NCBI RefSeq assembly: GCF_964204645.1
Contig: NC_134035.1
Location: 11,378,451-11,442,450, forward strand
Source: Tubulanus polymorphus
Lineage: Eukaryota; Animalia; Nemertea
Direction of reading: 5' to 3'
DNA: 64,000 nucleotides
The notes below the pieces were generated by a model. It worked only from the letters and a program-made list of their open reading frames with translations. It had not been told where the DNA came from and did no database searches. Made by a program: the position numbers and the translations under genes. Shown here one piece after another: positions 26,516-52,818 of this stretch. Every line of letters starts with the position of its first letter. Positions within the stretch are counted from its first letter, which is position 1.

Positions 26516-29500
26516 CTACAATTCTTCTTTCGCTCGTAATGAGTCCTGAAATGATTTGAACATTCTTTTCATTATTTCTAAACCTTGCTTCATGTTCAGA
26601 CATTTTTACGTAGATTTCGTTTTCGAGAAGAAACCGATTTCTACTCCGATTCAAAACTCATAGCTCCAAGAACTCTAAGTAATTCCTGAGATAGTATTTA
26701 AGATTATTGAAAATTGTTTCTTACGTATGAATCGCTTACCTGTAGTGCGTCGATTTTCTTCCAGTAAACGCTACCCTCCTGGTGAATGGGCATGATCGGG
26801 AATCGTAACCGAACTCTACGGTCGATACCTGCATTTTTAAAGAAAAGCAACGTTATACATTATGAATCACTAACGAACGCATTCAATGAGGGGCCAAACA
26901 TTTTTGCGAATGACGATTTTTATCGTTAAGACAGCTGTCCAATTTAGTTGTATGATATGACGATATGATTTATTCGCGAAAAAGATCGCTACAAAATTCC
27001 CATGTTATATACAGGTGTACGCAAAACGTACGGATGAAACAATGCGTTGAATTAAGGAAAAGCCAATGCTGGCTTGAACTGGTCTTTATCCCTCGTCCAT
27101 TCACACTCACATATACATTCATATTCATTCGTTACCGAATAAAAGGGAGACGTACATACAGAAAGAATTGCAGATGAAGTTGTGACGCGTTATAGCGAGA
27201 TTTGAAAATATTGATAGGTAGAACGAAGGTAGTTCACTGAAGTTCAATTTTGAAGTTGGGAATTGTATTTAAATTACCTGGAATAGGCGGCAGTAAAATC
27301 CTCGCCCCGGACGCGACCACCTTTTGAGGCACACCCTTGCCGTCCTTCACATACATATAGCCGTTTGAAGTATCGGCCGGGTCCCCGCTGTATCCGTTAG
27401 ACGCGTAGAATTCTAGAGGAGTTATGTCGTAAAGACGCCTCCAAGCGTGCGTCAAGGCGTTACCCGGTTTCTTTCCGCTATTCGTTGAGACTTTCGGGTC
27501 CACGTTATGCTTTTATGAAATGAAATCATATCTATCAAAATATAGCATCAAAAAATGCAAACTTATTCACGTTTTGAAGATCCACGGCGATATTTAGGGC
27601 TCGTAAACGCAAATGATAAAGGGTGAAAAGATGAAACGCAATTGAATTAGTAATATATAGATTATTTTTCTGAATAAGAAACAAGCGATGGACGCATTTT
27701 CTTTTCATTAGCATTACCTTGTAAGTAATATTGTGAGGATTCCAGCTGTTAAGCGGAGTCAGATAGATAATTTCTAACGGTATCGCGTACGTGAACCTTT
27801 GTTTGGCTTGCACGCATTTCTTCTTCCGGCAGTACTCGACCTGAGGGAAAATATATACACGACAAATTGACAACAAAGCAGAATGTCTAGAGCCATTAGT
27901 GAAATATACGAAAATGACCACAACAATACGACTTTGAGACTAAAAGGGATCAACTTTCATGTCAATGGAAAGGCAATGATTTAACCAAGTCCATTTACAA
28001 TGTTTGAATTAGAAAAATTTCAAAAATATACATGTTAAAAAATCAACAACAATCGTCAAAATTCTGAACGTTAAATAAAACGTTAAATGTTTCATGTGAC
28101 ATCGACCATTATATAGATTTAGCTTTTTATGCATAAGTTTCGATCAATCTTTTCACCATTAGCGAACACTGATCAGTGCTTTCTAACCTCAGCTGGTGCT
28201 ATTTTTTCCTGCGTGGTCGAAGCCGCGAACAAACTGTCGTCGTCGAAACCGCGGTGTTGGAATCTAGATCCCATAGCGTCCCGGTCACCGGTGAACCATC
28301 TGTGATAATACGCCGCGTTCAAATCTTTTTCTGGTTCTACATACGACTGAAAAAACATTTTTCAAAACCATTTAACTGTGACTTCTATTCAAAGGCGGGA
28401 AGGGGATTCGAATAAAATTGTAATCCTGGGTTGACGAGAGACAAGTTGTTAAAAAACCGAGCGTGTAAACTATATAGTGCTTCTCTAAAACTGACCTTGG
28501 CGCGACTTCCGCTGATTCCGTCATCGACCATGTTGGCGCCGTAACCGTCTTTACCCGGGATTTCAGACATCAATTCATCGAGAAAATCATATCGATAACT
28601 GTCCTCTTTCCAGAAGTCTTGGTCTTTAGGGGCCAGCTTTATAAGGTATAGAATTGAAATGTCAGCATTAACGCGTAACACAGTTATGGTGGCCAACTAC
28701 ATAATATTTATACGCATTTCGAGTCGTTAATTCAATCGATTAAATCAACATACTTTCTTTGACCAATAAGAAAAAATACTTAAGCGAAGTTTTTTAAAGT
28801 GAATATATCTTTGGTGGGAAGAACATATTTCAACGTTGAATTCGAATTGGTTTCGGAGTTTTAGCTTTCTGGTGTCGCGGTTGTATTACCTTATATCTGG
28901 CAGCTCTAGACATCTCGTATTGTTTGATATCATGTTTATTTGCCATTCTGACGTCTAAATCATCGACGAGTACGAGTCGTTTAGTCGATAAATAGTTCTT
29001 CAACGGGTGACATACAATTCGATAGTTCCATTGCGCCAGAATCGGAACGCCGTTCACTACTTTAGTAATCGTAGTCGGCAGGTAGGCGAAATTCTCAAAT
29101 CGATCTTTTCGTCCAGTGTACGATGAGTATCTTACCTAAAAAAGGAATCGGAAAATATCTATTCGTTAAGTTATTCTATAAACGAGAACAGACAAACAGG
29201 TTTTCATACAGCTCGTACTTTTTCCTGAAGATCAAGCCACGACGAGGCGTCCAGGTGGTGTCGGTCGCTATCGAACGATTCTTCGATGGCGCCTCCGTCA
29301 GATACAGTCCATCCTCCTTCCAGAAAACACAACAACGGCTTGAAATAATCCTTGTAGTTTCTGTGAGTTTCGTTTTGTTGACTGAACGCCTTGAAATATT
29401 CCCTCATCTCTTGAATCTGCAATATTTGTAATGATCAGTGTGAGTTGGTGAGAGTTGTTTGATAACTAGAAGATCTATAATGGAATCTAAGTTTTTATAA

Positions 29501-32500
29501 TTATAATAAACCATTTTACAGTTGCTAGCCGCCATTTTGTTAGGGTACTTTTGTCCCGTATTGTTGGGTCATTTTTTTCTCTTTTTTAAAAACTATCCGT
29601 GATGTGTATTGTATCATATTTCATCTGTCCATGGATGGATTTTGACAACTTCAGCAACATTCAAACCGCGTGAATCTCTAGTTTTCAGTTATGTTAAAAT
29701 CATTTCTCAAATTTACAACAATGCGACATGTGAGCGATATAAAAATCGGTGCTCAGTTTTTGCCGTGCGCATAGAAATCCAGGGTACTGAACTTTGAAGT
29801 TCGTTTTTTTCAGAAATAATTTTCTAAAAAATCCAAACATTTCAAGCACTGTGCGCATAAACGCCCCCTTTCAGGTGAACTTTGAAATTTTAAGATATCT
29901 TGCCTAGTTTTTTTCCTATGGCTCTTTAACTGCAGCGCGTGTATTGTCATTCCGAGATTTGGCGCTGTTTTCTTTGCGTGTATTTCAGTATATGGGTGTT
30001 ATTTCTTCATTTTCACTACACTTGTCTCTACGGAAAATGGTTTTAATTGTTGGTACGAGTATCAGGTTTAAATATTACGGCATTAATACTGTATTCCGTT
30101 CTCCGGCGCTAGTTCGTAATGGCTGTAGTGGTAACCGCTTTTACGGCAGGCAGAGGCTTACGTACATGCACCCAAGAAAACCCAAAATATCACTCTTTTG
30201 TTGTAAATGCAATCCACACACTTCTTGCGTTTTTGGTGATGGTAGATGTCACTTTTTACTTTTTATCACCTGCGTCTGACATTCGAAAAAAAGAAAACGT
30301 TTTCTTATATTTTCTTCCCAATCTAATCAATCTTGAGTGTACTTAATAGAAAGTATTCATAGAAAGTAGCTGAATATTTGCCCCACCCCATTTGTCCAGC
30401 TTTTTGACCACTTCTCCATCCATCTAATTTCAGTAGATTTTTATGTAAATTTATTGATAGACTACTGATTTAAATGGTCATCATACTCGATTTTGAGTGC
30501 TATATTTCTTTTCTTCTTCCATCTCAATATAGGCCCATATATTCTCTTCCCGCGCGCAATTTCGAATGCGTGATCAAAATGCCGCTCAGTCTCGCTGCTA
30601 AAACTGGTCAGAAAAATCCCTTAAACCCCAACATCTCTAATGTCTCCGATCTATTATATTGCATAAACGACGTGATATTTAAACCTGATACTCGTACCAA
30701 CAATTAAAACCATTTTCCGTAGAGACAAGTGTAGTGAAAATGAAGAAATAACTCCCATATACTGAAATACACGCAAAGAAAACAGCGCCAAATCTCGGAA
30801 TGACAATACACGCGCTGCAGTTAAAGAGCCATAGGAAAAAAACTAGGCAAGATATCTTAAAATTTCAAAGTTCACCTAAAATGGGGCATTTATGCGCACA
30901 GTGCTTGAAATGTTTGGATTTTTTAGAAAATTATTTCTGAAAATAACGAACTTCAAATTCAGTACCCTGGATTTCTATGCGCACGGCAAAAACTGAGCAC
31001 CGATTTTTATATCGCTCTCATGTCGCATTGTTGTAAATTTGAGGAATGATTTTAACATAACTGAAAACTAGAGATTCACGCGGTTTGAATGTTGCTGAAG
31101 TTGTCAAAATCCATCCATCGACAGATGAAATATGATACAATACACATCACGGATAGTTTTTAAAAAAGAGAAAAAAATGACCCAACAATACGGGACAAAA
31201 GTACCCTAACAAAATGGCGGCTAGCAACTGTAAAATGGTTTATTCAAATAGGAGATTATCATCAAACGTCCGAAATATCGGTAGTGAGAAAAACCGCTTT
31301 GTTTCCAATATGTCCTTCTTATAAAATACCCGATATCTTTGATCGGGCAAGATATTCTGTCGTTCGTATTTTAGGCTCATTCAATAAATTTTTCTAAATC
31401 ATCTCTACCAATTCAGGTTCACGATTTCAACTTGGAAACGAATTGTAGATTGAAAAACGTGGTTTATTCATTACTATCATCATCCGTGTAAACGTTCTTA
31501 TCGATATCATTTCCATATTTAGAACATATCTCATGAAAATTATTACCCTTTAAACGTGACTTGTTTTATGATACAAGAAACTCTCTAAAAGATTTATTTA
31601 AAGAGACATTGCGATGTATTACTAAAGAAATTAGTTAAGATAGTAAACCATTACCAACCTGTTCTTCAATCGTGTCCTTTTCTGTAACTGTTTTCGGGAC
31701 GTCTGGGAACGTGATTGCCTCAACCTGATTGTAAGCGGTTCTGTTCATTCCGGGAGCAATGGAGGCAGGCTTCACGAGTTTATAATCGTTGTGTCTGGTT
31801 CTGAATTCGACTCCGTTCAACACGGCTACGAATTCGCCCATGCCGACTGTATTGATGAGGTTTGAGTGATCGTGCATGGCGGCAGCTCGCTTGCCGCTGT
31901 ACGTGGTCGAATGGTAGGTCTTGGTTCCTGTGGAAACACAAGGGTTTGCGTTGGAAACGCTGATTCAACAAATATGAATTCTTTATGACAATTTATGAAA
32001 ACATGAATATATAAGGAAAATACTCTTTTTTCAAACATTCAAACGAACGTTTTTATTACACATAGTAACTCCATTATGCATGTATATATGGTCATTTTCC
32101 TCATCATTTCAACCGGATTTCCAGGAATATTTTGCAATTCTGAGAAATCTTTTATTTACATTTAAGAATTGTCTTACCTCTCATTGCTCACTCATTCGAA
32201 CACTTTCAGAAGAACGTGCGATAAATTTTGTGTATATGGAAAAAAGCGATATAACAACTTTGAAACTTACCCTGGCGAGTGAGTCGTAGTTGTTTGATAC
32301 CAGATTTACCATCGGATCTGATACGTTCTTCTACGAACATTTGTTGTAACATCAACTGTCGCGAAATGTGGCTCATCGACTGTTCGATGTGTTTCAGTCG
32401 GGCGTCCAGAGATTCACCGACAGTTTGTTTTTTGTCCTTTTCTGGAGCGGCTGAGTGTGCGGCTGCGGTCATCACGACCAAAACTACCGCGCAGGACCAG

Positions 32501-32514
32501 CAAGTGGAAATCAT
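26516..32514 (-). CDS. Uncharacterised signal-peptide plus C-terminal KEEL protein, array copy 1 (576 aa)
   Basis: Ten coding exons: 32514-32271, 31927-31659, 29416-29219, 29135-28890, 28636-28496, 28346-28188, 27840-27718, 27509-27278, 26828-26740, 26545-26516. Total 1731 nt, all introns GT-AG, no internal stop. Confidence 0.9.
29505..31244. mobile_element. 1.74-kb foldback DNA element with ~575-bp near-identical inverted arms, between coding exons 2 and 3 of copy 1
   Basis: 29505-~30080 is the reverse complement of ~30670-31244 (aataaaccattttacagttgctagccgccattttg...). Absent from the homologous intron in copies 2-4. Confidence 0.92.
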
Positions 32515-32904
32515 TCTCGATTAATCTGATTAGAAGGAAAATAATTTTAAAGAGAAAGATATAATAGATGGTTATAGGCAGCTATTATCGTGTGTAATTA
32601 CAGTGTCGATAACGGGCTCCAATCTTATGCTTTCGTTCTTCATAGATCGGATGTGGCCTCTGCTTTGTGTCATCAGATAAGTTACATATTTATATAAATT
32701 CACAGTGAAACTTTTATTCGATATAGTATGTTCACATATATATTCGTGAATTAATAGATTATCTGCTTTCGTCAAAATCTAAGAGGACTCAAATTTAAAT
32801 CTTAAAATGCCATCCTATGATTTTGAATGAGATCTAATTAAGAGGAAAAATTGCCTCGAATCTTGTCACTGCTTTATTCAGTTTTTTTTTCCAGAGAAAC
32901 TTAC

Positions 32905-32990
32905 TTGTCTTTGTAGATCCCGTGTGAGTGTTTCGGAGCTTTCGACGACGAATGCGGCTCTAATTAGCGTACGCGTTTTATTTAAGCGCC
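32905..32990 (-). promoter_or_regulatory. Putative non-coding first exon and TATA-like promoter of copy 1
   Basis: GTAAGT donor at 32904 and TTAAATA ~25-30 nt upstream of cattcgtcgtcg. The block is conserved with 53275-53355 upstream of copy 4. Confidence 0.55.
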
Positions 32991-33625: not shown

Positions 33626-36600
33626 CTACAATTCTTCTTTCGCTCGTAACGAGTCCTGAAATGGTTTTAATTTTCATCACATCATTTTCAAACCTTGCAA
33701 CATTTCTAGGGATTGAGCTCCTGGTCCAAAAGGTGTGAATTAGAATTCTTAACATGAAATTGTGTAATCGAGTAGGAACTGAACTTTTTATTTCCACGTC
33801 AAATTACGTAACTCATTATTAGAAATACAGCGCAAAGATTGAATTCATGTAATTTCTAGTAATAGATGGTTAAAAGGTTGAAAATTGTATTTTATGAATA
33901 GCTTACCTGTAGTGCGTCGATTTTCTTCCAGTAAACGCTACCCTCCTGGTGAATGGGCATGATCGGGAATCGTAACCGAACTCTATGGTCGATACCTGCA
34001 TTTATATTATACAAGAAATGTCACATCATGTATAGCATTTCTGAACCAACCGTTATGGAGGTAGTCATTGAGGGGTCAATCATATGTAAAAAAATGTATT
34101 TATAGCAAGGACAGTTTGAGGAATATTGAATTTACCTGGAATAGGTGGCAGTAAAAGCTTCGCTCCAGATGCGACAACCTTTTGAGGCACACCCTTATTG
34201 TCTTTGATGTACATGAATCCGTTTGAAGTGTCGGCCGGGTCCCCGCTGTATTCGTTAGACGCGTAGAATTCATGAGGAGTAAGCTTGTATGTCTCCCTCC
34301 AAGCGTGCGTGAAAGCATTATCCGGTTTCTTTCCACTACCCGGTGAGGTTTTTCGGTCCTCGTCATGCTTTTTTTAAATGAAGTTATATATATGTTAAGA
34401 TATAGTATCGCTATGATATAAACTTTATTCATATGATCTACTACGAAATGGCACATATATAGGTGAATGACGATGGAATAAAACGGATTTGGACGAAAAA
34501 TGATTTTTTCTGAATGAGATAAATTAATTCATTAATATTGTAACCTTGTTTTATATCATAACATTATTCATTGATTGTCACATTGTACAGATTATTGCAA
34601 TCTATTTCTGAAATAAATAAGATGAGAACCATAAACGAAGAACTCATTTCATTAGCATTATTACCTTGTAAGCAATATTGTGGGGATTCCAGCTGTTAAG
34701 CGGAGTCAGATAGACAATTTCCAGCGGTATCGCGTACGTGAACCTTTGTTTGGTCTGAACGCATTTCTTTCTCTTGCAGTAGTCGGCCTGGGGAAAAACA
34801 TCGAACAAGATTATAACGAAGCAAAATAGAGTCGTCCAAGAATTATGTACACCAAAATTGAGTTTAAGTATATGTGGTTAAAGTACTGCGTGATTCGGGT
34901 TTTTAACTTATATACGTGATGGAAAAATGATACAAAAGCCGTTAAGAATAACCCCAAAAATGTATCGATAAAATAAAAATGATAATCGTCACACTGCACA
35001 AAGATCGACTTTTTGAACACATTGATTTTATAAGCCTTTCGTTTTCGATGAATCTTTCACCATGTCGTACTGCTCTGAGCCAGTTTTTTCTAACCTCAGC
35101 TGGTGCTATTTTTTCCTGCGTGGTCGAAGCCGCGAACAAACTTTCGTCGTCGAAACCGCGGTGTTGGAATCTAGATCCCATAGCGTCCCGGTCACCGGTG
35201 AACCATCTGTGATAATACGCCGCGTTCAAATCTTTTTCTGGCTCAACGAACGACTGTAAAAACAAGGCGATTATTTCATGAATTAGTGGAAACATTTTTT
35301 TCAAAACGCCTTTTCGGCGACTTTTTCTTTAAGGTGGGAAGGGGCATTTGAAGAAAATGAATCGTGGAACGTGAAAAACCGATGGTCTAATCCACAGAGA
35401 GCTTCTTTAAAACTGACCTTGGCGCGACTTCCACTGATTCCGTCATCGACCATGAAGGCGCCGTAACCGTCTTTACCCGGGATTTCAGACATCAATTCAT
35501 CCAGCAAATCATATTGATAACTGCCCTCTTTCCAGGAGTCTTCGTCTTTAGGTGCCAGCTTAGAGAACAAAGAAAGTATCATCAGTATCAATGACAGTGT
35601 TGTTTATACGTTATTCGTGTAAAATATTTTTTCAAAAAGTCAATGAGTTTTTGATCAAGACAAATCGTGAACATTTTAAAAGATTATCAGGAGTTTTCAG
35701 GAGTATTACCTTATATCGGGCAGCTCTAGACATCTCGTATTGTTTGATATCGTGTTTATTTGCCATTCTGACGTCTAAATCATCGACGAGTACGAGTCGT
35801 TTAGTCGATAAATAGTTCTTCAGCGGGTGACATACAATTCGATAGTTCCATTGCGCCAGAATCGGGACGCCGTTCACTACTTTAGTAATCGTAGTCGGCA
35901 GGTAGGCGAAATTCTCAAATCGATCTTTTCGTCCAGTGTACGATGAGTATCTTACCTAAAACAAGGATTCGAAAAATATCTATTTGTTAAGTTATTCTAT
36001 AAACGAGAACAGAAAAAAGGTTTTCATACAGCTCGTACTTTTTCCTGAAGATCAAGCCACGACGAGGCATCCAGGTGGTGTCGGTCGCTATCGAACGATT
36101 CTTCGATGGTACCTTCATCAGATACAGTCCATCCTCCTTCCAGAAAACACAACAACGGCTTGAAATAATCCGTGTAGTTTCTGTGAGTTTCGTCTTGTTG
36201 ATCGAACGCCTTGAAATATTCCCTCATCTCTTGAATCTGCAATATTTGTAATGATCAACGTGAGCTGGTCGGGGTTTATTCGATGATTAGATTTTTAAAG
36301 CAATTTGTGTAAAGGCTAAACGTCCGAAAGAGTCGGAAAAACCGCTTTGTTCCCGTTTTTTTTCAAACGAAATATTTATGATCGGGGAAGATATTCTGCT
36401 GTTCATATTTTCACTTCGTTAAATGTATATTCCTCAATTTTCTCTATTCGTACAAGTTCATTCTGGTTCAATTTGGGAAACGAATAGTATAAATTGAATA
36501 TTACTTTATCAATTTTGAACAGTCTTATGAACAGTTCTTTTGTCTACGTATAGCAAGTGAAGAATAGATATTGCTAGATATTATTATATCGCCAGTTTTT

Positions 36601-37347
36601 TTTTTTTTAAATAAATAAATCTTACTTCAGTCATTACGTATCTCATGAAAAATGATTACCCTTTAAACATGACTTGTTTTACTACGTAAGACACTCTGGG
36701 CATTTGTAGTAAAAATTTGTATCCAAAGAAATTAGTTAAGTAGTAAACCATTACTAACCTGTTCTTCAATCGTGTCCTTTTCTGTAACTGTTTTCGGGAC
36801 GTCTGGGAACGGGATTTCCTCAACCTGATTGTAAGCGGTTCTGTTCATTCCGGGAGCGACGGAGGCAGGCTTCACGAGTTTATAATCGTTGTGTCTGGTT
36901 CTGAATTCGACTCCGTTCAACACGGCTACGAATTCGCCCATGCCGACTGTACGAATGTGGTTTGAGTGATCGTGAATGGCAGCAGCTCGCCTGCCGCTGT
37001 ACGTCGTCGAAAAGTAGGTCTTGGTTCCTGAGGAATAAATCAAAAGGGTTTGGTTTAGTGACGCTGTCTTTATCTATGACGAATTCCTTTGTGGTTGTTG
37101 CAATTTGTAAATGATTACTTTGAAACTTACCCTGGCGAACGAGTCGTAGTTGTTTGATACCAGATTTACCATCGGATCTGATACGTTCTTCTACGAACAT
37201 TTGTTGTAACATCAACTGTCGCGAAATGTGGCTCATCGACTGTTCGACGTGTTTCAGTCGGGCGTCCAGAGATTCACTGACAGTTGAGTGTGCGGTAGCG
37301 GTCATCATGACCATAACAACCGCGCAGGACAACCAAGTAGAAATCAT
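33626..37347 (-). CDS. Array copy 2 (~567 aa; 9-aa deletion after the signal peptide)
   Basis: Same 10-exon structure; the exons I read are in frame. Terminal coding segment 33655-33626 = DSLRAKEEL*. Confidence 0.88.
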
Positions 37348-38116: not shown

Positions 38117-38464
38117 CATCCTCGCTTTCCAGGGTCCGATTGCCGCTCGGTGGAGCTAACGCCAATACAAACCCTGGCCGCAAACACTTCGTTGGTCTAT
38201 TACATCGCCCAAGATTTCTTGGGCGGACAGGTTCCCACTCAGCGCCACCGTCGAATCTAGCCAATCAAAGGCGTTTTTACCGGCACGAAGTTTGCTCTAT
38301 AAGTATCACGCATCTGATTGGCTAGATATATAGACTGGTGGCGCTGAGTGGGAGCCCGTCCGAGCAAGAAATCTTGGGCGATAGTCCAGTGAAGGGTTTG
38401 CGGCCAGGGTTTGTATTGTCGTGAGCTCCAGCGGGCGGCAATCAAACCCTGGCAAGCGAGGTTG
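38117..38464. mobile_element. 348-bp palindromic MITE sharing termini with family A
   Basis: catcctcgctttccaggg...ccctggcaagcgaggttg with long internal inverted arms. Degenerate 9-bp flanks cgtgtgttc / cgtgtgaat. Confidence 0.8.
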
Positions 38465-38611
38465 CGTGTGAATGGGACTATACCTTTAGACACTATGTAC
38501 TCTATTGGGGCAGAGAAACCCGGAAAAGGACAGTTATATAGGATATAACTTGCAAAAAGGGGACTTAACAAAATTTCTAGGGGACAACATTGCCCCTTGT
38601 TTAATACGGCC

Positions 38612-38832
38612 CTGATATCTATGTAAGGAGTTGACGTATCATTGCCCTTCCCGGCTCCCTTATCAATGTATGGAGTTGCATCATTGCCCTTACCGGCTCC
38701 CATATCCATGTATGGAGTTGCATCATTGCCCTTCCCAGCTCCCTTATCAATGTATGGAGTTGTATCTTTGCCCTTCCCGGCTCGCATATCCATGTATGGA
38801 GTTGTATCGTTACCCTTCCCGGCTCCCATATC
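38612..38832. repeat. 42-bp minisatellite (~5 units)
   Basis: tgtatggagttg(c/t)atc(a/t)ttgcccttcccggctccc(t/a)tatc(a/c)a repeated. Confidence 0.9.
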
Positions 38833-38916
38833 CGTGGCCTTGTGAATTGATCTTATGTTAGTTTCTATTCCTCACAGATTTTTTCTGTTTTAAAAAATCA
38901 TAGGAATAACATCAGA

Positions 38917-40385: not shown

Positions 40386-41947
40386 CGTTATAAAGACTAT
40401 AAGCGCATCTTATGTAAATTACTACGGTTGGCAGAAAAAAAATTATTATGAACGTAAATTGCATTTTTTCAAAGGTAACATGAAAGGTACTTGGAATGTC
40501 ATCAACTCGTTTATTGGAAAATCGTCTAGGAACTCAAAGTTACCAGATGTTTTTTATTTGAATGGTTCTGCCGTTAGTGGTTCTTATGATATTGCCAATG
40601 AATTTAACTCTTTATTTGCTAATGTTGGCCAAAATATGGCGAATTCTATTCCAGATTCCGGAGTTAGTTTTGAAAATTATTTAAGCCGTCCAATAGCGGA
40701 AAATTTTTTCTTCTTCCCAACTAACGCTTATGAGATCGCTGACATTATGAATAGTTTTTCAGCAAACTAGGGGATCGGTATCAATGAAATCTCAATGAAA
40801 ATTATTAAGAAAGTTATTGACACAATCAAAGACCCAATTTCCCATATATTTAATTTTTGTTCCGTTTGAACTAAAAATCGCCAGAATTTGTCCACTTTAT
40901 AAGAAAGGTGACGCACATTGTTGTGATAATTATCGACCTAATATCAATCCTACCCTGTTTCTCCAAGATTTTGGAAAAAAATGTATATAACCTCATTTTG
41001 TGATAAAATCTCAATCTTAGATAGCAACCAGTTTGGATTCAGAAAAAAACCACTCAACAACAATGGCTTTGACTCAGATTATAGATAAAATTTCAGCTAA
41101 TATTGAATCTAAAACACCATCGATTGGGATATCTTTAGATCTCTCCAAAGCTTTTGATTCTGTCAATCATAGCATTGTACTACATAAATTAAACCATTAT
41201 GGTATAAAAGGTAACGCACTGATGTGGTTCAAAAACTACTTGAGTGACATATTGTTCAAATTGAAGCATTTAAGCATTTAAATGAACTTCGCTTAGTATT
41301 GGTATTGGAGTGCCCCAAGGTTCTATCGTAGGTCCTTTGTTGTTTCTAATCTATATGAATGACTGTACAAATTCATCTGATATTTCAAATTTCATTTTGT
41401 TCCTTGATGACACGAATTGTTTCTATTCCGTAAAAATATTAATCGTCTTGTTAATACTGTCAACTGTGAGTTATCAAATCTTGTAATCTGGTTTCGTGCC
41501 AATAAGCTATCTATTAATATAAAAAAGACATCTTACATTATATTCAGTAAGTCGTATATTGGTAATACACAAATCTCTATTGATGGCCAGGATATTGACC
41601 GAGTCTCGAGTATTTCAACGTAAATATCTAAAATTCCTTAAATTATCGTGATTATGTATTTTGAACTTCCATGTTGTATTTTTTTTATGTTTGAATGCAT
41701 TCACTGATGCAGCGTGCGTGTGTGTATACGTGTGGTGCTTGTAGTGTGCATGTGTAAGAGTGAATTTGTATGTATGTTAATTTTTTTCTTTTGGGGTGGC
41801 ACGGCTCCGATAGATCTTTGTGATCTCTCTGTGTAGCCCGCATTTTCTTGTTACATTTTTTCACTGTATATTATACAATATCAATCATGTAATAATGTAA
41901 CAACCAAATGATAAATAAATACTACTATACTCTACTAAGCTTATACG
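40386..41947 (+). mobile_element. 5'-truncated, degenerate CR1/L2-type LINE (ORF2 RT remnant plus 3' tail)
   Basis: RT motifs YRP-SILPCFSKILEK, QFGFR, LDLSKAFDSVNH, GVPQGS-VGPLLFLIYMND and DDT, broken by stops and frameshifts. Ends in an aataaataaatactacta tail. The empty site is visible in copy 4 (tttattatcaatccagc). Confidence 0.9.
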
Positions 41948-41972
41948 ATTATCAATTCAGCTACATTTAGAT

Positions 41973-42074
41973 TAGTTAGTTACCTAATCGTTGGTGGTAA
42001 GATTTTTATAATCGGATGGGCTCATACGAACTTATATGTGGTTTGTGAAACTAAACCAGTCAGGTTACCGACTA
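41973..42074. mobile_element. 102-bp internally deleted derivative of family B
   Basis: tagttagttacct...caggttaccgacta with TSD catttagat (41964-41972, 42075-42083). Inverted relative to 22125-22970. Confidence 0.88.
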
Positions 42075-42148
42075 CATTTAGATATGAATTTTTAACGTAT
42101 CTATTGTCGATCTTCTTTCTTCCGTGCACAGCACCTCCAAATAATCAT

Positions 42149-45100
42149 CTACAATTCTTCTTTCGCTCGTAACGAATCCTGAAATGGTTTGAATTTTCGT
42201 TACATCATTTTTAAACTTGCAACATTTCTAGAGATTAACTTCCTGGTCCAAAAGATGTGAATTAGAATTCTTATCATGAAATTGTCTAACCGAGAAGGAA
42301 CTGAACTTATACTTCCGAGTCAAATTACGTAACATATAAATCAAAAAAACTGCGCAAAGATATTCGAATTCAAGTATTTTCTAGTTATAGATGGTGGAAA
42401 TGTTGAAAATTATATTTTATGAATCGCTTACCTGAAGTGCTTCGATTTTCTTCCAGCAAACGCTACCTTCCTGGTGAATGGGCATGATCGGGAATCGTAA
42501 CCGAACTCTACGGTCGATACCTGCATTTATATTTATAAGAAATATCACATCATTTGAAGCATTTTTGAACATTGCATTTATCGCAAGGACAGTTGTTGAA
42601 TATCTAAATTACCTGGAATAGGCGGCAATAAAAGCTTCGCTCCAGATGCGACAACCTTTTGAGGCACACCCTTATTGTCTTTGATGTACATGAAGCCGTT
42701 TGAAGTGTCGGCCGGGTCCCCGCTGTATCCGTTAGATGCGTAGAATTCTAAAGGAGTTAGGTTGTATGTCTCCCTCGAAGCGTGCGCCAAAGCATTACCC
42801 GGTTTCTTTCCAATACCCGGTGAGGTTTTTGGGTCCTCGTCATGCTTTTTATTTAAATGAAGTTATATATATGTTGAGATATAGTATCGCTATGATATAA
42901 ACTTTATTCATATGAACTACCACGAAATGGCACATATATAGGTGAATGACGATGGAATAAAACGGAATTGGACGAAAAATCATTTTTCTGAATGAATGAA
43001 ATTAATTCATTAGTTGTAACTTTGTTTTATATCATAACATTATTCATCGATTTCACATTGTACAGTGTTGCAATCTATTTCTGAAATAAATAAGATGAGA
43101 ACCATAAACGAAGAACTCATTTCATTAGCATTATTACCTTGTAAGCAATATTGTGGGGATTCCAGCTGTTAAGCGGAGTCAGATAGACAATTTCCAACGG
43201 TATCGCGTACGTGAACCTCTGTTTGACTTGCACGCATTTCTTTTTCTGGCAGTATTCGGCCTGGGGAAAAACATCGAACAAGATTGTAACGAAGCAAAAT
43301 AAAGAGTCGCCCAAGCATTATGTACACCCAAATTGAGATTAAGTATATGCGGTTAAAGTACTGCGTGATTTGGGTTTTTAAATTACTTATACGTGATGGA
43401 AAAATGATACAAAAGCCGTTCGTTAAGAATAACCCCAAAAATGTATCGATAAAATAAAAGTGATAATCGTCACACTCCTCAACGATCGACGTTTTGAATA
43501 CATAGATTAGGTCATTAGTTTTCGATGAATCTTTCACCATGTCGTACTGCTCCGTACGAGTTTTTTCTAACCTCAGCTGGTGCTATTTTTTCCTGCGTGG
43601 TCGAAGCCGCGAACAAACTGTCGTCGTCGAAACCGCGGTGTTGGAATCTAGATCCCATAGCGTCCCGGTCACCGGTGAACCATCTGTGATAATACGCCGC
43701 ATTCAAATCTTTTTCTGGTTCAACGAATGACTGTAAAAACAAGGAGATCTTTTCATGAATTAGTGGAAACATTTTTTTTTTCAAAACGATTTTCTGCAAA
43801 TATTTCTTAAAGGTGGGAAGGGGCATTTGAAGAAAATGAATCGTGGAACGTGAAAAACCGATGGTCTAATCCATCGAGAGCTTCTTTAAAACTGACTTTG
43901 GCGCGACTTCCACTGATTTCGTCATCGACCATGAAGGCGCCGTAACCGTCTTTACCCGGGATTTCAGACATCAATTTATCGAGAAAATCAGTTCGATTAC
44001 TGCCCTCTTCCCATGAGGCTTCGTCTTCAGGTGCGAGCTTAGAAAAAAGAAAGTATCATCAGTATCAATGACAGTGTTGTTTATACGTTATTCATGTAAA
44101 ATATTTTTCTAAAACAAAAGTCAATGAGTTTTTGATCAAGACAAATCGTGAACATTAAAGATTACCAGGAGTTGTCAGGAGTATTACCTTATATCGGGCA
44201 GCTCTAGACATCTCGTGTTGTTTGATATCATGTTTATTTGCCATTCTGACGTCTAAATCATCGACGAGTGCAAATCGTTTTGTCGATAAATAGTTCTTCA
44301 GCGGGTGACATAAAATTCGATAGTTCCATTGCGCCAGAATCGGGACGCCGTTCACTACTTTAGTAATCGTAATCGGCAGGTAGGCGAATTTCTCAAATTG
44401 ATCTTTTCGTCCAGTGTACGATGAATATCTTACCTAAACAAGGAATCGGAAAATATCTATTTGTTAAGTTGTTCTATAAACGAGAACAGAAAAAAGGTTT
44501 TCATACAGCTCGTACTTTTTCCTGAAGATCAAGCCACGACGAGGCGTCCAGATGGTGTCGGTCGCTATCGAACGATTCGTCGATGGTGCCTTCATCAGAT
44601 ACAGTCCATCCTCCTTCCAGAAAACACAACAACGGCTTGAAATATTCCTTGTAGTTTCTGTGAGTTTCGTCTTGTTGATCGAACGCCTTGAAATATTCCC
44701 TCATCTCTTGAATCTGTAATATTTGTAATGATCAATGTGAGTTGGTCGGGGTTTTTCGATGATTAGATTTTTAAAGCAATTTGCGTAAAGGCTAAGCGCC
44801 CGAAAGAGTTGGAAAACCGCTTTGTTCCCGTTCTTTCAAACGAAATACCTGATATCTATGATCGCTTTTTTCTAGATAAATCTTACTTCAGTCATTACGT
44901 ATCTCATGAAAAATGATTACCCTTTAAACATGACTTGCTTTTTATGACGCAAGACACTCAAAGCATTTGTAGTAAAAATTTGTATCCAAAGAAATTAGTT
45001 AAGTAGTAAACCATTACTAACCTGTTCTTCAACCGTGTCCTTTTCTGTAACTGATTTCGGGACGTCTGGGAACGGGATTTCCTCAACCTGATTGTAAGCG

Positions 45101-45610
45101 GTTCTGTTCATTCCGGGAGCGACGGAGGCAGGCTTCACGAGTTTATAATCGTTGTGTCTGGTTCTGAATTCGACTCCGTTCAACACGGCGACGAATTCGC
45201 CCATGCCGACTGTACGAATGTGGTTTGAGTGATCGTGAATGGCAGCAGCTCGCCCGCCGCTGTACGTCGTCGAAAAGTAGGTCTTGGTTCCTGAGGAATA
45301 AATCAAAAGGGTTTGGTTTAGTGACGCTGTCTTTATCTATGACGAATTCCTTTGTGGTTGTTGCAATTTGTAAATGATTACTTTGAAACTTACCCTGGCG
45401 AGTGAGTCGTAGTTGTTTGATACCAGATTTACCATCGGATCTGATACGTTCTTCTACAAACATTTGTTGTAACATCAACTGTCGCCAAATGTGGCTCATC
45501 GACTGTTCGACGTGTTTCAGTCGGGCGTCCAGAGATTCACTGACAGTTGAGTGTACGGCTGCGGTCATCATGACCATAACAACCGCGCAGGACAACCAAG
45601 TGGAAATCAT
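42149..45610 (-). CDS. Array copy 3 (~567 aa)
   Basis: Same 10 exons, open frame. Terminal coding segment 42178-42149 = DSLRAKEEL*. Carries several private amino-acid changes. Confidence 0.85.
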
Positions 45611-47121
45611 TATTGCTAAATCTAAGTGAAATAAAGTGAAATGATGATTTTAGAGAGAAAATTTAATTCTCGATATGTAAGAACCGTTACGGGGTGTAAC
45701 GTTCATGAAATGTAAAAAATATACCTCATTCTTATGTACCCGGGAACTCGGGTAGATTTTATTTGTAAAATACACTTTCGCAATTGGTGAATTCTTTGAA
45801 TAATCAAAAGACCACGTTGTTTTAAAGTCGATTGAAAATTGAGTAAGGATTCGGAGATGATAGATTTACTTTTCATTTGTAAGAATAGCAAGATAACATC
45901 GATGGAAAACTGTGAGTAAAATATATTAACTTTTCAAAACATTTTGTTTAAAAATCGTGTATCTTCCCGGTCTTATTTTACTCACCGTTCCTGGCAGCGA
46001 ATTTCACGATATGTTAGATTTGATTATTTTACCGGAATCATATATGGGCGTGGTATCGATTTTGCTTGAAAACATGTGCATGAAAAGCCTTAAATTATGC
46101 GAGCATTAAGTTCAAAAACTAGTTATAAAAATCAGTCATAGCTTAGCAGCGAAAAAAAAAGTTTGTAGACAATATTATGACCTTTCATATGATACCAGGT
46201 TTGAATATTTAAGTGACAAAGCATTGGTCAGTATTTGTTAGATTCATCAGATTCGGGACCAGGACTTGGCCTTGAGAAGGGTTTGATTTTCGTCGTCTAT
46301 ATCATAAATATCATCTGAACTTTTTTATCAAGTCACTGGATTCACTGTCTATTAGCTCTAAATCATCGTCTCCAAACTCATCATAAGCAAAGATTTATTA
46401 TAAAACCTGATCTGTATTCATGATTTTACCTTATTTATTTCGAAAAAATGACAAATTTTGACTCAATATTGCTCCAATCGATTTAGGTCCGTCTGTAGAG
46501 TTTCCAGAACCTGTCATGTCAGGGCCCAAGACCTGACATGATGGGACCTCAGGTGACAGGTTGATTCGCTAAAATGAAAATCGTTATGACTGAACCGAAG
46601 ATAGGCGATTAGAAGACATGATAGGCGCGGATTTAGAACACATGATAGCCGATGAGAATACAAAGAACATATCGTAGTGCTTTCTGAATATATTATTCAA
46701 AAACAAAAAACAAACTAGGATTATGTTATGAATTCATTTAAGAATTTATGTTTGTCCGTTTATAAAAAGTTGTTGAACTATATCGCCTTGTATATATAAC
46801 AATAAAGGTGCAATGATTGTGACTTATTTGAGAACATTGAAAGAATTGTTTACAATTAATTTATTTTTTTCTTGTAACATGAAACATAAACATATCAAGA
46901 TCAGGCAATGATACCAGTAGTGCCTTTTGTAATCATAATCAGCATTAATGATAATCATTATACTCATTATAATTAGACCCTCTATTATTACATATTATTA
47001 TTATTGATTACTCGCAATATAATTAATTCACCAAGAGCACATACAATTTAAAAACATTTTTGTTCTAAACTTATAAGTTGAATTAGACACATCGTAGTTG
47101 CGATAACACTGATTAATTAGT

Positions 47122-47935
47122 GAGACCTCACACGGCAGCTCGCGCCATTTTGAAGAGCTTCGGGACCTGTGGTGACAGGTCTGCTTGAAAACTGATGAAA
47201 TAAAGGAAAACTTTAAATTCTTTGGTCTATTCATAGTAATGAGTATAACATAAATTGCTAACCGATGGATATAGTTAATCTTAAGTTAATATAAAACAAT
47301 AATTTTGAAGCGAGACCTCACACGGCAGCTCGCGCCATTTTGAAGAGCTTCGGGACCTGTGGTGTCAGGTCTGCTTGAAAACTGATGAAATGAAGGAAAA
47401 GTTTAATTTTTTTGGTCTAGTTAATCTTAAGTTACTATAAAACAATAATTATGAAGCGAGACCTCACACGGCAGCTCGCGCCATTTTGCAGAGCTTCCCG
47501 GGACCTGAGGTGACAGGTCTGCATTAAAACTGATGAAATGGAAAAAACTTTACTTTTTAAAACCTATATATAGTAATGAGTATAATATGAGTATAATATC
47601 AATTGCTAACCATAGATAGAGTTAATCTTAAGTTACTATAAAACAATGATTATGAAGCGAGACCTCACACGGCAGCTCGCGCCATTTTGCAGAGCTTCTT
47701 GAGACCTGTAGTGACAGGTCTGCATTTAAAATGATGAAATGAAGGAAAACTTTAATTCTTTGGTCTCTTTATAGTAATAAGTATGATATATATTGCCAAC
47801 CATGGATATAGTTAATATTAAGTTACTATAAAATAATGATTATGAAGTGAGACCTCACACGGCAGTTCGCGCCATTTTGCAGAGCTTCGGGACCTGTGGT
47901 GACAGGTCTGCATTTAAACTGATATGAATGGGAAA
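47122..47935. repeat. Satellite-like tandem array, 5 units (periods 190, 146, 201, 190 bp)
   Basis: Units start gagacctcacacggcagctcgcgccattttg at 47122, 47312, 47458, 47659 and 47849. Confidence 0.92.
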
Positions 47936-49044
47936 AACCTTCATGCTTTAAATTGATGAGTTGATTTAAAATCAGTCTCTATATTGCATTTGGCTCTTTT
48001 ACATGTACATCATAAAAACAATGATTATTATAATTATTAGTGTGACTTCAGGACAGTGATCGATGCCGAACTGGATAGTAAGCAGATATTTTTCAGTGTC
48101 TTATTGTGGGAACGAAATATCAAGACCTCGATTCACCTATCGAAAATATTCTCTTATAATGTTCTCTCAACTTCTACATTAAATAATTCATCTATGCCTG
48201 AAACTTTTTTCCCTTTCATAAAGAAATAAGTCATAGTTAAACACATAAATATTTTCTTCTTATAAATCAACCTTTCAAATGAATTATTAGTGCAGAACGT
48301 TTTCCTTATCGAATCATTTTCGACATATACGACGGGTCAGAATATTCATTCAACTCAAAATGTTCTTCCATTCGTCTAGCGCATGCCTATATATTTCGGC
48401 GTTTCGTCAAATATTGTCGTGAGTTTGGGTTTTTTCATTCAATTGCTCAAAAACAATGAATTCCAACCATCAACAATTTTCATAGACTGGTTACCGGTCT
48501 CTATCTTCAATTAGATATTGAATGGGACATGCAACCAGTCTAAACTTTTACGGCGAATAATCGACAGAAACGCCATCTACCGACTAATCATGTGCTATGA
48601 TGAAAACCTGTAGGTGAAACGACGATAATTTACACTTTTCACAGCACACGCCGGGGCTCTGTACTGTAAGGATTCGAGTATTAAGAAGTAATCATCTTTC
48701 AAAGAAGGCAGCTAGGTTTCGTACCGAACGGGTTCGAATCCCTGCCGAGGGAGGATGACGCCATCATCGAAACGAATCTTCAAAAAAGGTTGTCCTCGTC
48801 GAAAGATTGCATAACTTCGAATCCTAACAAAACAGGTTGTCATCGTTCAAGAGCTCTGTAACAGATGTAAGGGTAAAACTTCCTAAAATCCACTAGATTA
48901 GATCTATATTGAATGACGTGAACGCATCAGTATTTCCATTGTGTACTCATTTATTATCAATCCAGCTATACATTTAAATATGACATTTTAACGTATCTAT
49001 TGCCGATCATCTTTCTTTCATGCATCGCATCTCCAAATGATCAT

Positions 49045-52000
49045 CTACAATTCTTCTTTTGCTCGTAACGAGTCCTGAAATGGTTTAAATTTTCATTACA
49101 TCATTTTTAAACATTTCTAGAGATTAAACTCCTGATCCAAAAGATGTGAATTAGAATTCTTAACGTGAAATTGTGTAATCGAGAAGGAACTGAACTTTTA
49201 CTTCCGAGTCAAATTACGTAACACGTAGCTAAAAAAAACTGCGCGAAGATATTCGAATTCAAGTAATTTCTAGTTATAGATGGTGGAAATGTTGAAAATT
49301 ATATTTTATGAATCGCTTACCTGAAGTGCGTCGATTTTCTTCCAGTAAACGCTACCCTCCTGGTGAATGGGCATGATCGGGAAACGTAACCGAACTCTAC
49401 GGTCGATACCTGCATTTATATTATACAAGAAATATCACATCATTTGAAGCATTTCTGAACATTGTATTTAACGCAAGGAGTAGTTGTTGTTGAATATCTA
49501 AATTACCTGGAATAGGCGGCAATAAAATCTTCGCTCCAGATGCGACCACCTTTTGAGCCACACCCTTATTGTCTTTGATGTACATGAAGCCGTTTGAAGT
49601 GTCGGCCGGGTCCCCGCTGTATCCGTTAGATGCGTAGAATTCTAGAGGCGTCAAGTCGTAAACCGTCCTCGAAGCGTGCGCCAAAGCATTACCCGGTTTC
49701 TTTCCAATACCCGGTGAGGTTTTTGGGTCCTCGTCATGCTTTTTATTTAAATGAAGTTATATATATGTTAAGATATAGTATCGCTATGATATAAACTTTA
49801 TTCATATGAACTACCACGAAATGACACATATACCGGTGAATAACGATGGGATTCAACGGAATTGGACGAAAAATCATTTTTCTGAAGGAATGAAATTAAT
49901 TCATTAGTTGTAACTTTGTTTTATATTATAACATTATTCATTGACTGTCACATTGTACAGATTGTTGCAATCAATACGTTGAGAACCATTAACAAAGGAC
50001 TGACTTCATTAGCATTATTACCTTGTAAGCAATATTGTGGGGATTCCAGCTGTTAAGCGGAGTCAGATAGACAATTTCCAACGGTATCGCGTACGTGAAC
50101 CTCTGTTTGGCTTGCACGCATTTCTTTTTCCGGCAGTACTCGACCTGGGGGAAAACATCGAACATGATTATAACGAAGCAAAATAAAGAGTCGCCCAAGC
50201 ATTATGTTCACGTAAATTAAGTTTAAGTATATGCGGTTGAAGTACTGCGTGATTCGGGTTTTTAAATAACTTCTACGTGATAGAAAAAGGATGCTAGAGC
50301 CGTTAAGAATAACCCCAAAAATGAAACGATAAACAAGACAATGACACTCGTCACACTCCTCAGAGATCGACTTTTTTAACACATTGATTTTACAGGCTTT
50401 TCGTTTTCGATGAATCTTTCACCATGTCGTACTGTTCCGTACGAGTGCTTTCTAACCTCAGCTGGTGCTATTTTTTCCTGCGTGGTCGAAGCCGCGAACA
50501 AACTGTCGTCGTCGAAACCTCGGTGCTGCCATCTAGATCCCATAGCGTCCCGGTCACCAGTGAACCATCTGTGATAATACGCCGCGTTCAAATCTTTTTC
50601 TGGTTCAACGAACGACTGTAAATATAAGGAGGTCATTTCATGAATGGGAACATTTTTCAAACGATTTCTATTATAGTGGGAAGAGGATTTGAAGAAAAAG
50701 AATCGTGGTTGATGAGAGACAAGTTCATGATAGACCGATGGTCTAAACCATAGAGTGCTTCTCTGATCTAAAACTGACCTTGGCGCGACTTCCACTGATT
50801 CCGTCATCGACCATGTTGGCGCCGTAACCGTCTTTACCCGGGATTTCAGACATCAATTCATCCAGAAAATCATATCGATAAGTGTCCTCTTTCCAGGAGT
50901 CTTCGTCTTTAGGTGCCAGCTTAGAAAAAAAGAAAGTATCATCAGTATCAATGACAGTGTTGTTTATACGTTATTCATGTAAAATATTTTTCTAAAAAGT
51001 CAATGATTTTTTAATCAAGACAAATCGTGAACATTGTAAAAGATTATCAGGAGTTGTCAGCAGTATTACCTTATATCGGGCAGCTCTAGACATCTCGTAT
51101 TGTTTGATATCGTGTTTATTTGCCATTCTGACGTCTAAATCATCGACGAGTACGAGTCGTTTTGTCGATAAGTAGTTCTTCAACGGGTGACATACAATTC
51201 GATAGTTCCATTGCGCCAGAATCGGGACGCCGTTCACTACTTTAGTAATCGTAGTCGGCAGGTAGGCGAAATTCTCAAATCGATCTTTTCGTCCAGTGTA
51301 CGATGAGTATCTTACCTAAACAAGGAATCGGAAAATATCTATACGTTAAGTTATTCTAAAAACGAGAACAGACAAAAAAGGTTTTCATACAGCTCGTACT
51401 TTTTCCTGAAGATCAAGCCACGACGAGGCGTCCAAGTGGTGTCGGTCGCTTTCGAACGATTCTTCGATGGCGCCTTCATCAGATACAGTCCATCCTCCTT
51501 CCAGAAAACACAACAACGGCTTGAAATAATCCTTGTAGTTTCTGTGAGTTTCGTTTTGCTGACTGAACGCCTTGAAATATTCCCTCATCTCTTGAATCTG
51601 CAATATTTGTAATGATCAGTGTGAGCTGGTCGGTTGTTTTTGACTATAAGATTTCAATGGATTTATCTAAAAGCTAAGAAGTTTAAGCGTCCGAAAGAGT
51701 CAGAAAAACTGCTTTGTTTCTGTTCTCATCATTTCTAGTTAGTTTATTTGTCTACGTATAGCAAGTGAAGAATAGATACTGCCAGGGTTTTTTCTAAATA
51801 AATTTTACTTCAGTCATTACCAACCTGTTCTTCAATCGTGTCCTTTTCTGTAACTGATTTCGGGACATCTGGGAATGGGATGTCCTCAATCTGATTGTAA
51901 GCGGTTCTGTTCATTCCGGGAGCGATGGAGGCAGGCTTCGCGAGTTTATAATCGTTGTGTCTGGTTCTGAATTCGACTCCGTTCAACACGGCTACGAATT

Positions 52001-52818
52001 CGCCCATGCCGACTGTACGAATGTGGTTTGAGTGATCGTGCATGGCAGCAGCTCGCTTTCCACTGTATGAGGTCGAATGGTAGGTCTTGCTTCCTGTGGA
52101 AAACAAAATCATAAGGGTTTGGGTTGGTCACGCTTTCTTGTAACTATGCTGTAACTATGACGAATTCGATGGGTCCAGTTCCACAGTTCGGAGTTAAGAT
52201 TTGAACCTGAGTTAACTCATTGAAAATGAACTAATTTTAACTCAGAGTTAACTCTAACTCACAACTGTGGAACTAGGTCCTGGTGGTTATTACAATTTGT
52301 AAATGATAAAAAGCTCTTATGTATGAATCGCGCGAGAAATACTACTTTTCTATAGTATTTCTGCCTTGAGTTTCCAGGAATCGTTATTTAGAGAAATCTT
52401 GTACATTCTATACACTATATCAAAGCCATGTAACTATCTCTCATTGCTTCCTTAGTAAAAAAACGTGAAAGCGTTGGTGTATTGTTGCCAGCAGATTGGT
52501 ATGAGTCCATTATGGTAAGGGTGAGGAACATACAACTTATTGCGTGGAAATAATATAGCAGCTTTGAAACTTACCCTGGCGAGTGAGTCGTAGTTGTTTG
52601 ATACCAGATTTACCATCGGATCTGATACGTTCTTCTACGAACATTTGTTGTAACATCAACTGTCGCGAAATGTGGCTCATCGACTGTTCGATGTATTTCA
52701 GTCTGGCGTCCAGAGATTCACCGACAGTTTGTTTTTTGTCCGTTTCTGGAGCGGCTGAGTGTGCGGCAGCGGTCATCACGACCAAAACTACCGCGCAGGA
52801 CAACCAAGTAGAAATCAT
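49045..52818 (-). CDS. Array copy 4 (~576 aa)
   Basis: Same 10 exons, open frame, long N-terminus like copy 1. Terminal coding segment 49074-49045 = DSLRAKEEL*. Confidence 0.88.
52171..52280. mobile_element. ~110-bp palindromic MITE in a copy 4 intron
   Basis: gggtccagttccacagtt...aactgtggaactaggtcc. The empty site is seen in copies 2 and 3 (gacgaattcctttgtggttg). Confidence 0.8.

Follow-up and report, generated by a model that had tools for sequence, protein, structure and literature searches.

The window analysed here is a stretch of 64,000 nucleotides from the genome of the ribbon worm Tubulanus polymorphus (contig NC_134035.1, positions 11,378,451 to 11,442,450), which at 26516-52818 holds four direct head-to-tail repeat units with coding signal all on the minus strand, each a gene (g1 to g4) for an uncharacterized secretory-type protein. 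The core of these proteins is almost certainly homologous to the part of phage and prophage tail fibres that lies distal to the baseplate-attachment domain, and the same high confidence extends to the gene structure described below. Overall, the genes are probably best explained as encoding a trimeric, ligand-binding, fibre-like protein that is retained in the endoplasmic reticulum (ER).

Homology of the core to phage tail fibres

Comparison of the predicted structure of the g1 protein (P0001) with predicted viral structures (BFVD) using Foldseek matched gp431 of Bacillus phage G with an E value of 2.9e-33, a template modelling (TM) score of 0.69 and 24% identity over 572 columns, and tblastn of P0001 against 50,697 phage genomes returned gp431 as the sole match (27% identity, E 1e-23). 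A search from the gp431 domain recovered 117 proteins, comprising two of phage-G-like type, then bacterial and metagenomic sequences, then the animal family (E 1e-17 to 1e-29); several of the bacterial matches are named "phage tail protein" or "tail-collar fiber domain-containing" and carry PF12571. Residues 57-557 of P0001 align by BLASTP with residues 185-676 of P0348 from Pseudomonas sp. TCU-HL1 at 30% identity over 517 amino acids (E 2e-62), and profile comparison of 35 eukaryotic with 26 bacterial members by hhalign gave a probability of 100% and E 9e-102 over 485 columns. PF12571, the baseplate-attachment domain, scores 51 bits in P0324 and 42.8 bits in P0348 against a cut-off of 23, whereas neither P0001 nor 34 eukaryotic relatives have any Pfam match.

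The gene order around P0348 is that of a P2-like prophage: gpV, gpW, gpJ, gpI, P0348, two small unknown genes, sheath, tube, gpE, tape measure, gpU and gpD. P0348 thus sits exactly at the position of the P2 fibre gene H. The two genes that follow it (L015, 10192-11491) encode 273 and 155 amino acids with no Pfam match, at the place of the P2 gene G for the fibre-assembly chaperone, and by this analogy they may be the chaperones of the P0348 fibre type. The animal tandem genes have no chaperone-type partner nearby. A further relative was found on a phage-like metagenomic contig, and a scan with the bacterial motifs located seven loci in scattered bacterial genomes. Pattern scans of bacterial and viral contigs with the animal motifs gave no match; the prophage homologues escaped them because their versions of these motifs are different.

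Phage, bacterial and eukaryotic members have in common 31 invariant residues (among them H127, D129, E204, H224, E251, D402, E442 and D506) and 25 near-invariant ones (among them H100, H102 and E113). The four worm copies keep 55 of these 56 residues, the exception being N252K in g3.

In phage G the relevant stretch (L014, 337266-356612) contains gp431 itself, in which weak tail-protein matches and an ILEI/PANDER-like domain (25.4 bits against a cut-off of 27) accompany the fibre domain, and its neighbour gp427 (1826 amino acids), which has BNR/sialidase-type repeats, a bacterial Ig domain and Hoc-like parts. The stretch from gp427 to gp431 looks like a block of surface or fibre proteins.

A sequence-only reading of this DNA had found no known domain in the proteins and had put them forward as the best candidate here for an undescribed system. 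It was right in that no curated library recognises them, but the second claim does not hold, since the core is clearly homologous to the distal part of the tail fibres of phages and prophages; the link was beyond the reach of a reading of the letters. Pfam searched exon by exon gave nothing, and the whole protein against Pfam, NCBIfam and PHROGs gave sub-threshold noise only. A weak DUF7705 match (E 0.043) occurred in one of 35 members, and a search of the worm's own genome and control genomes with PF24804 returned nothing. Structure libraries were equally silent: in the PDB neither a sequence-profile search (E up to 10) nor Foldseek (E below 0.1) had a match, and the ESM Atlas gave nothing by shape or by features. 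In a wide structure search (VIA) the best hit, at Z 5.1, was the receptor-binding protein of lactococcal phage 1358, followed by Mtd, the p2 receptor-binding protein and TssK; all of these Z values lie under the noise level of the tool and are suggestive only in hindsight.

An ancient eukaryotic family

Exon 2, searched against 1.8 billion cluster representatives, found 351 clusters, the g1 protein itself included, and P0001 as query found 613 matching proteins. Named members come from Cnidaria (Nematostella, Actinia, corals, Hydractinia, Dendronephthya), Mollusca, Annelida and Brachiopoda; the animal members are 44-50% identical to P0001 over 91-100% of the query and are all devoid of Pfam domains, and the family alignment (A1) has 75 invariant columns. 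Outside animals, members were found in the choanoflagellate Hartaetosiga gracilis, the amoebozoan Nolandella and the dinoflagellate Amphidinium massartii, of which the latter two are possibly contaminants because their sequences are from transcriptomes. With a family this ancient and widespread, and only five members in T. polymorphus, the lineage expansion proposed earlier is not sustained.

The typical member has about 700 amino acids, arranged as a signal peptide, a stalk (with collagen repeats in the H. gracilis member, P0141), a core of about 500 residues and an extra C-terminal domain. The core motifs RHNDY, SDRH and YAIPLE..TPL..WNP are found in the Tubulanus copies as in the family. 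The extra C-terminal domain, of about 110 residues, is His-rich, with invariant H-x-H, G-H-x-H, C and C-x-D-x-H; it is modelled confidently as a small beta domain (predicted local distance difference test, pLDDT, 88), and has no fold match (Z at most 3.8). This domain was not found in P0001, P0151, P0152 or P0155, and tblastn and hidden Markov model (HMM) searches found no remnant of it within the window. The four copies group as one clade in the family tree, within the animals, with two metatranscriptome sequences as sisters and then a further T. polymorphus gene, on contig C5; this entire branch is without the His-rich domain, which by the tree the nemertean branch has evidently lost.

Two members depart from the usual layout. 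P0093 (1120 amino acids, from Logan) has a plastocyanin-like copper domain inserted in the core, and P0141 (1082 amino acids) has an insertion of about 250 residues in the His-rich domain besides its N-terminal collagen repeats. Database names of family members are all "uncharacterized" or unsupported: "Counting factor associated protein D", given to a scallop member, was rejected for want of Pfam support and because the papers using the name concern cathepsins, and "Amine oxidase", given to an Elysia marginata member and likewise without Pfam support, was also rejected as a guide to function. Within the library that was searched, no paper was found describing the animal family or its link to tail fibres.

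Gene models, splicing and separateness of the copies

Gene g1 was modelled from open-frame fragments and splice signals, and the models for g2 to g4 were transferred by alignment (Table 1). All four have 10 coding exons, with GT donors and AG acceptors at every intron and the terminal stop as the sole stop codon; exon 1 is shorter by 9 codons in g2 and g3. The g1 stop codon ends with position 26516, and the g4 ATG has its A at 52818. Residue for residue, the models of g1, g2 and g3 are identical to P0001 (XP_074660714.1), P0151 (XP_074660708.1) and P0265 (XP_074660707.1), RefSeq entries all named "uncharacterized protein" of T. polymorphus; no identical record for g4 was present among the database proteins fetched, and its protein is 93% identical to that of g1. 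The earlier description of four intact head-to-tail paralogues with open frames and a common exon structure is thereby borne out by the rebuilt models.

Table 1. Positions of the tandem genes and their main parts in the window
Feature	Position	Strand	Details
g1 (LOC141913152)	26516..32514	-	576 aa; exons 32514-32271, 31927-31659, 29416-29219, 29135-28890, 28636-28496, 28346-28188, 27840-27718, 27509-27278, 26828-26740, 26545-26516
g2 (LOC141913148)	33626..37347	-	567 aa; exons 37347-37131, 37027-36759, 36236-36039, 35955-35710, 35558-35418, 35253-35095, 34787-34665, 34367-34136, 33995-33907, 33655-33626
g3 (LOC141913147)	42149..45610	-	567 aa; exons 45610-45394, 45290-45022, 44713-44516, 44433-44188, 44037-43897, 43730-43572, 43260-43138, 42844-42613, 42520-42432, 42178-42149
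g4	49045..52818	-	576 aa; exons 52818-52575, 52093-51825, 51597-51400, 51315-51070, 50919-50779, 50615-50457, 50144-50022, 49738-49507, 49409-49321, 49074-49045
Exon 1 (signal peptide and most of N-terminal long helix)	g1 32271..32514; g2 37131-37347; g3 45394-45610; g4 52575-52818	-	hydropathy, AlphaFold2
Tail-fibre-like core, g1 residues ~57-570 (exon 1 end to exon 9; likewise in g2-g4)	26740..32340	-	BLASTP, hhalign, Foldseek
Terminal 30-nt exon, DSLRAKEEL and stop	g1 26516..26545; g2 33626-33655; g3 42149-42178; g4 49045-49074	-	frame, alignment

Evidence from RNA consists of contigs of public runs of the same organism, in which no depth, strand or expression level can be read. Contigs of run X4 skip exactly introns 1, 2, 3, 4, 6 and 7 of g2, with GT..AG ends in minus-strand orientation. 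One loose contig end is an exon 8/exon 9 junction of the g1/g3/g4 type, and a second is g1-specific exon 1 sequence. These junctions and ends indicate that several copies are transcribed and spliced as modelled, introns 1-4 and 6-8 being confirmed by spliced contigs.

The copies differ from one another at 7-12% of residues with synonymous divergence (dS) of 0.09-0.16, their intron lengths and spacers differ, and an insertion in intron 2 is confined to g1; they are genuine, and not assembly or haplotype duplicates. The closest copy shifts along the gene, with g1/g4 at 95% at exon 1, g2/g3 at 97% around exons 2-3, g2/g4 at 96% around exon 4 (a block that extends into intron 4) and g3/g4 at 95% around exon 8, a mosaic that points to gene conversion or unequal crossing-over between tandem copies. 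The four paralogues are recent duplicates, and they recombine. The fifth, diverged T. polymorphus paralogue, on contig C5, has matching exon blocks.

It might be supposed that the array is an artefact of haplotype collapse or expansion, of bacterial or phage contamination, or of pseudogenes, as the public runs are available as contigs only and the domain is of phage type. Besides the divergence and differing intron content of the copies, this is contradicted by nine spliceosomal introns in each, by a position on a 14-Mb contig between animal genes, by open frames under purifying selection, by the spliced transcripts and by the fifth paralogue elsewhere. Contamination and pseudogenes are already refuted, and an artefact of any kind is extremely improbable. 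The setting is that of an animal chromosome, with genes for G-protein-coupled receptors (GPCRs) and retrotransposon fragments on either side and no tail or baseplate gene cluster.

Protein features and selection

The only hydrophobic 19-residue stretch of the chain is N-terminal (residues 1-24, with the sole Kyte-Doolittle window above 1.6), and none occurs later. AlphaFold2 predicts residues 27-65 as a single long helix in a model of fair quality (overall pLDDT 79.8, predicted TM score, pTM, 0.81). An NRT sequon (N143 in g1) is common to all four copies, and the mature chain has four conserved cysteines (g1 201, 279, 423 and 428), invariant across the family as two cysteine pairs. All four copies end in RAKEEL. 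The KEEL tetrapeptide matches the PROSITE ER-targeting pattern PS00014, [KRHQSA]-[DENQ]-E-L, and is the C-terminus of human ERp72. The signal peptide, sequons, absence of a transmembrane segment and ER-retention-type C-terminus described in the sequence-only reading are therefore present in every copy, and its coiled-coil motif is exact in g1 to g3, while g4 has LKY for LKH. Its view of the family as ER-resident does not extend beyond this one tandem cluster, to which KEEL is peculiar: among 176 homologues of at least 450 residues, a KDEL-type end occurs in the Tubulanus tandem proteins only, and in 0 of 174 others.

The pairwise ratio of nonsynonymous to synonymous substitution rates (dN/dS) among the copies is 0.22-0.44. 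The copies differ at 34% of the sites that vary in the family versus 3% of those at least 90% conserved in it, and the differences concentrate at residues 313-336 and 457-504. Selection on the copies is purifying, with a few tolerant loops; the diversifying selection suggested earlier is ruled out by the dN/dS values. The KEEL exon shows no amino-acid change among the four copies, although synonymous changes are present in it.

Origin of the domain

The eukaryotic sequences all fall into a single clade of a joint tree, with support of 100 and a long stem; within this clade Amphidinium branches first, then Nolandella and the choanoflagellates, then the animals. Phage and bacterial sequences form several deep clades around the eukaryotes, and none is nested inside them. 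The tree is unrooted and gives no direction of transfer. Because of the deeper prokaryotic clades, the standard fibre context and the lack of a nested bacterial sequence, the favoured history is one old transfer to a eukaryote from a phage or prophage, with vertical descent and many losses after it. The eukaryote-to-phage direction is known for other fibre tips (PMC12923769), and a reverse transfer from a stem eukaryote is still conceivable here.

In the eukaryotic proteins a signal peptide and coiled-coil stalk (collagen in the choanoflagellate) have taken the place of the baseplate-attachment domain. Most eukaryotic members have in addition the small C-terminal beta domain with its two HxH motifs, the nemertean branch has lost it, and the Tubulanus cluster alone has the KEEL exon. 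A more far-reaching proposal is that a whole receptor-binding module was captured by an early eukaryote before the choanoflagellate-animal split and set on a stalk as a trimeric microbial-surface recognition protein, an innate-immune or feeding lectin, which the Tubulanus branch, by losing the His-rich domain and gaining KEEL, turned inward as an ER-lumenal binder. This is rather doubtful; if true, it would define a previously unrecognised class of viral-origin lectin in marine animals, serving innate immunity or feeding.

Proposed function and alternatives

In the mechanism proposed for the worm proteins, the signal peptide would direct the chain into the ER, where the N-terminal helix and fibre-like head would form homotrimers, or, given the 88-93% identity between the copies, possibly mixed trimers. 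Because phage tail fibres form trimers and the stalks of the eukaryotic proteins consist of coiled coil or collagen, a trimer appears by analogy somewhat more probable than another state; the weak structural neighbours from the VIA search are all trimeric phage receptor-binding proteins or TssK. The head would bind a ligand, most likely a glycan and possibly a microbial one, by analogy with fibre tips, and binding of a glycan or other ligand rather than catalysis is offered tentatively, its chances falling a little short of even. KEEL would then be read by the KDEL receptor and the protein returned from the Golgi, so that it would act or be kept in store in the ER or at an early stage of the secretory pathway; its relatives would be released. 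All four copies have both the hydrophobic N-terminal signal and the C-terminal pattern of ER-retrieved proteins, and retention on this basis is an evenly balanced proposition.

Several observations weigh against this explanation. For a receptor-binding tip the conservation is unusually high, phage and animal sequences being 30% identical and those of cnidarians and nemerteans 45-50%, and the many invariant His, Asp, Glu and Arg residues would equally fit an enzyme or a metal site. PDB searches by sequence and by fold turned up no solved structure like the core domain. A KDEL-type end is no guarantee of ER residence. Finally, the X4 contig rows shown contain no junction for introns 5 and 9, the latter of which precedes the KEEL exon, and the ER-retention end thus rests on the reading frame, its conservation in four of four copies and the identical RefSeq models.

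Many phage fibres and spikes carry glycan depolymerases, and the core could instead be an enzyme, for example such a "depolymerase" that degrades or modifies glycans or a metal-dependent oxidoreductase, in which case the Tubulanus copies would be ER-lumenal and act on glycoproteins or secretory cargo. The very high cross-kingdom conservation of polar residues, all kept in the four copies under purifying selection, is in keeping with this, as are the His-rich C-terminal domain of most eukaryotic members, the plastocyanin-like copper domain inserted in one relative and the sialidase-type BNR repeats of the gp431 neighbour in phage G. However, the core has no similarity to any enzyme family or fold, the enzyme-like database names have no Pfam support, and in phage fibres HxH holds a structural metal on the trimer axis, for example at the tip of T4 gp37. 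By analogy with that tip, the HxH motifs of the present family (one preceding the head, and two within the C-terminal domain that the relatives have) could be axial metal sites. A catalytic core is accordingly graded as unlikely, if worth keeping in mind.

The proteins could also be exported in spite of KEEL, as a defence lectin of mucus or glands or as a toxin-like binder, with KEEL slowing export or acting after uptake by a target cell. KDEL-type ends serve in the latter way in some bacterial AB toxins. Every other member of the family appears to be secreted and has no retrieval signal, and the layout of stalk and globular head resembles that of trimeric recognition proteins that are soluble; genes for products secreted in abundance are commonly amplified in tandem with gene conversion, and nemerteans, according to a passage in PMC6410017, secrete copious toxic mucus. 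On the other side, the proteins have no similarity to any toxin family, and the invariance of the KEEL exon amid synonymous changes suggests that the signal itself is under selection. Export is quite improbable.

Array layout and neighbouring sequence

Start-to-start spacings of the repeat units are about 6.8-7.2, 8.5 and 6.9 kb for most blocks and 4.9-5.1, 8.3 and 6.8-7.2 kb for the 5' blocks, which deviate because of the insertion in g1 intron 2. That intron is 2.2 kb long versus 0.2-0.5 kb in the other copies, the length being due to two inverted copies, of about 340 nucleotides each, of one sequence facing each other at 29940-30810. Open reading frames (ORFs) within them, at 29944-30279 (+) and 30654-30806 (-), have their first 44 residues in common (MSFRDLALFSL...) and then diverge, and neither has a Pfam match. 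The insertion looks like a foldback or miniature inverted-repeat (MITE-type) element.

The g2-g3 spacer is about 1.6 kb longer than the others because it holds reverse-transcriptase fragments (RVT_1, 30 bits) of a retrotransposon lacking long terminal repeats (non-LTR), at 40459-41281 (+). The same spacer has, at 38257-38829 (-), an open frame with five tandem 14-residue units, TPY(I/M)D(K/M)GAGKGND, and no Pfam match, together with a 42-nucleotide tandem repeat at 38638-38847; the frame may belong to an exon for a repetitive secreted protein, or may be just a minisatellite. Between g3 and g4, at 47105-47979, there is a looser array with start-to-start spacing of 146-201 nucleotides. Upstream of g4, at 54083-54838, a 126-nucleotide tandem array has five overlapping 252-nucleotide members, the identity being 100% for two of them, 99% for another and 62-75% for the outer pair.

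Elsewhere in the window, a single-exon ORF at 11432-13867 (-) encodes a receptor-like protein of 811 amino acids with a Cys-rich ectodomain, several hydrophobic segments and no Pfam match, and one at 20573-21628 (+) encodes a rhodopsin-family GPCR of 351 amino acids (7tm_1, 54 bits).

Significance and comparison with known systems

In summary, a domain of about 500 residues has stayed 45-50% identical between sea anemones and ribbon worms and occurs also in choanoflagellates, and it has no Pfam entry, solved structure or studied member. The tail-fibre link provides a first handle on its possible function, namely to trimerise and to bind a surface ligand, and the case is a rare and large one of a phage structural module persisting in animal genomes. 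The homology also draws attention to a type of fibre, as yet uncharacterised, that P2-like prophages have in common with the giant phage G. What is new here is that an animal secretory protein combines a phage fibre domain with a derived end for ER retrieval, and the Tubulanus cluster amounts to a natural experiment, in which the metal-type C-terminal domain is gone from the same head and a signal for ER retrieval is present.

Among the closest known systems are the P2-like prophage fibres with PF12571 (P0348, and P0324 of Pseudoalteromonas tunicata), which have the same region after the attachment domain and the common motifs RTRHNDY, SxRH, YAIPLE..TPL..WNP and ADT. The worm proteins differ from these in lacking PF12571 and in having a signal peptide and coiled coil, introns and the KEEL end; the prophage fibre domain likewise has no Pfam entry or solved structure. 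In phage G, gp431 (G3MAH2, 1013 amino acids) is of the same fold and sequence family over its C-terminal 470 or so residues, and phage G is the only isolated phage with the domain among the 50,697 records. Unlike the worm proteins, gp431 has a long N-terminal part and an ILEI/PANDER-like domain, and has neither a signal-peptide context nor KEEL.

The eukaryotic family of about 700 residues (Nematostella LOC116604390, Lingula LOC106153767, Pecten LOC117322199 and P0141 of H. gracilis) has the same layout of signal peptide, stalk and core, but differs from the nemertean clade in having the His-rich C-terminal domain and no KDEL-type end. KDEL-type soluble ER residents such as ERp72 have the same pattern in the C-terminal tetrapeptide, while the rest of the worm proteins is unrelated to known ER chaperones and enzymes. 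Collectins, ficolins and C1q-type proteins are analogous in their signal peptide, trimerising coiled-coil or collagen stalk and globular head, with no relation in sequence or fold. The Peptidase S74 domain of MYRF, an intramolecular chaperone of phage tailspike type, offers a precedent, being a trimer-forming module of phage fibres or spikes that became fixed in the genomes of animals; that domain is unrelated, belongs to a membrane-bound transcription factor and, as an S74 entry of Pfam, has no match in the worm proteins.

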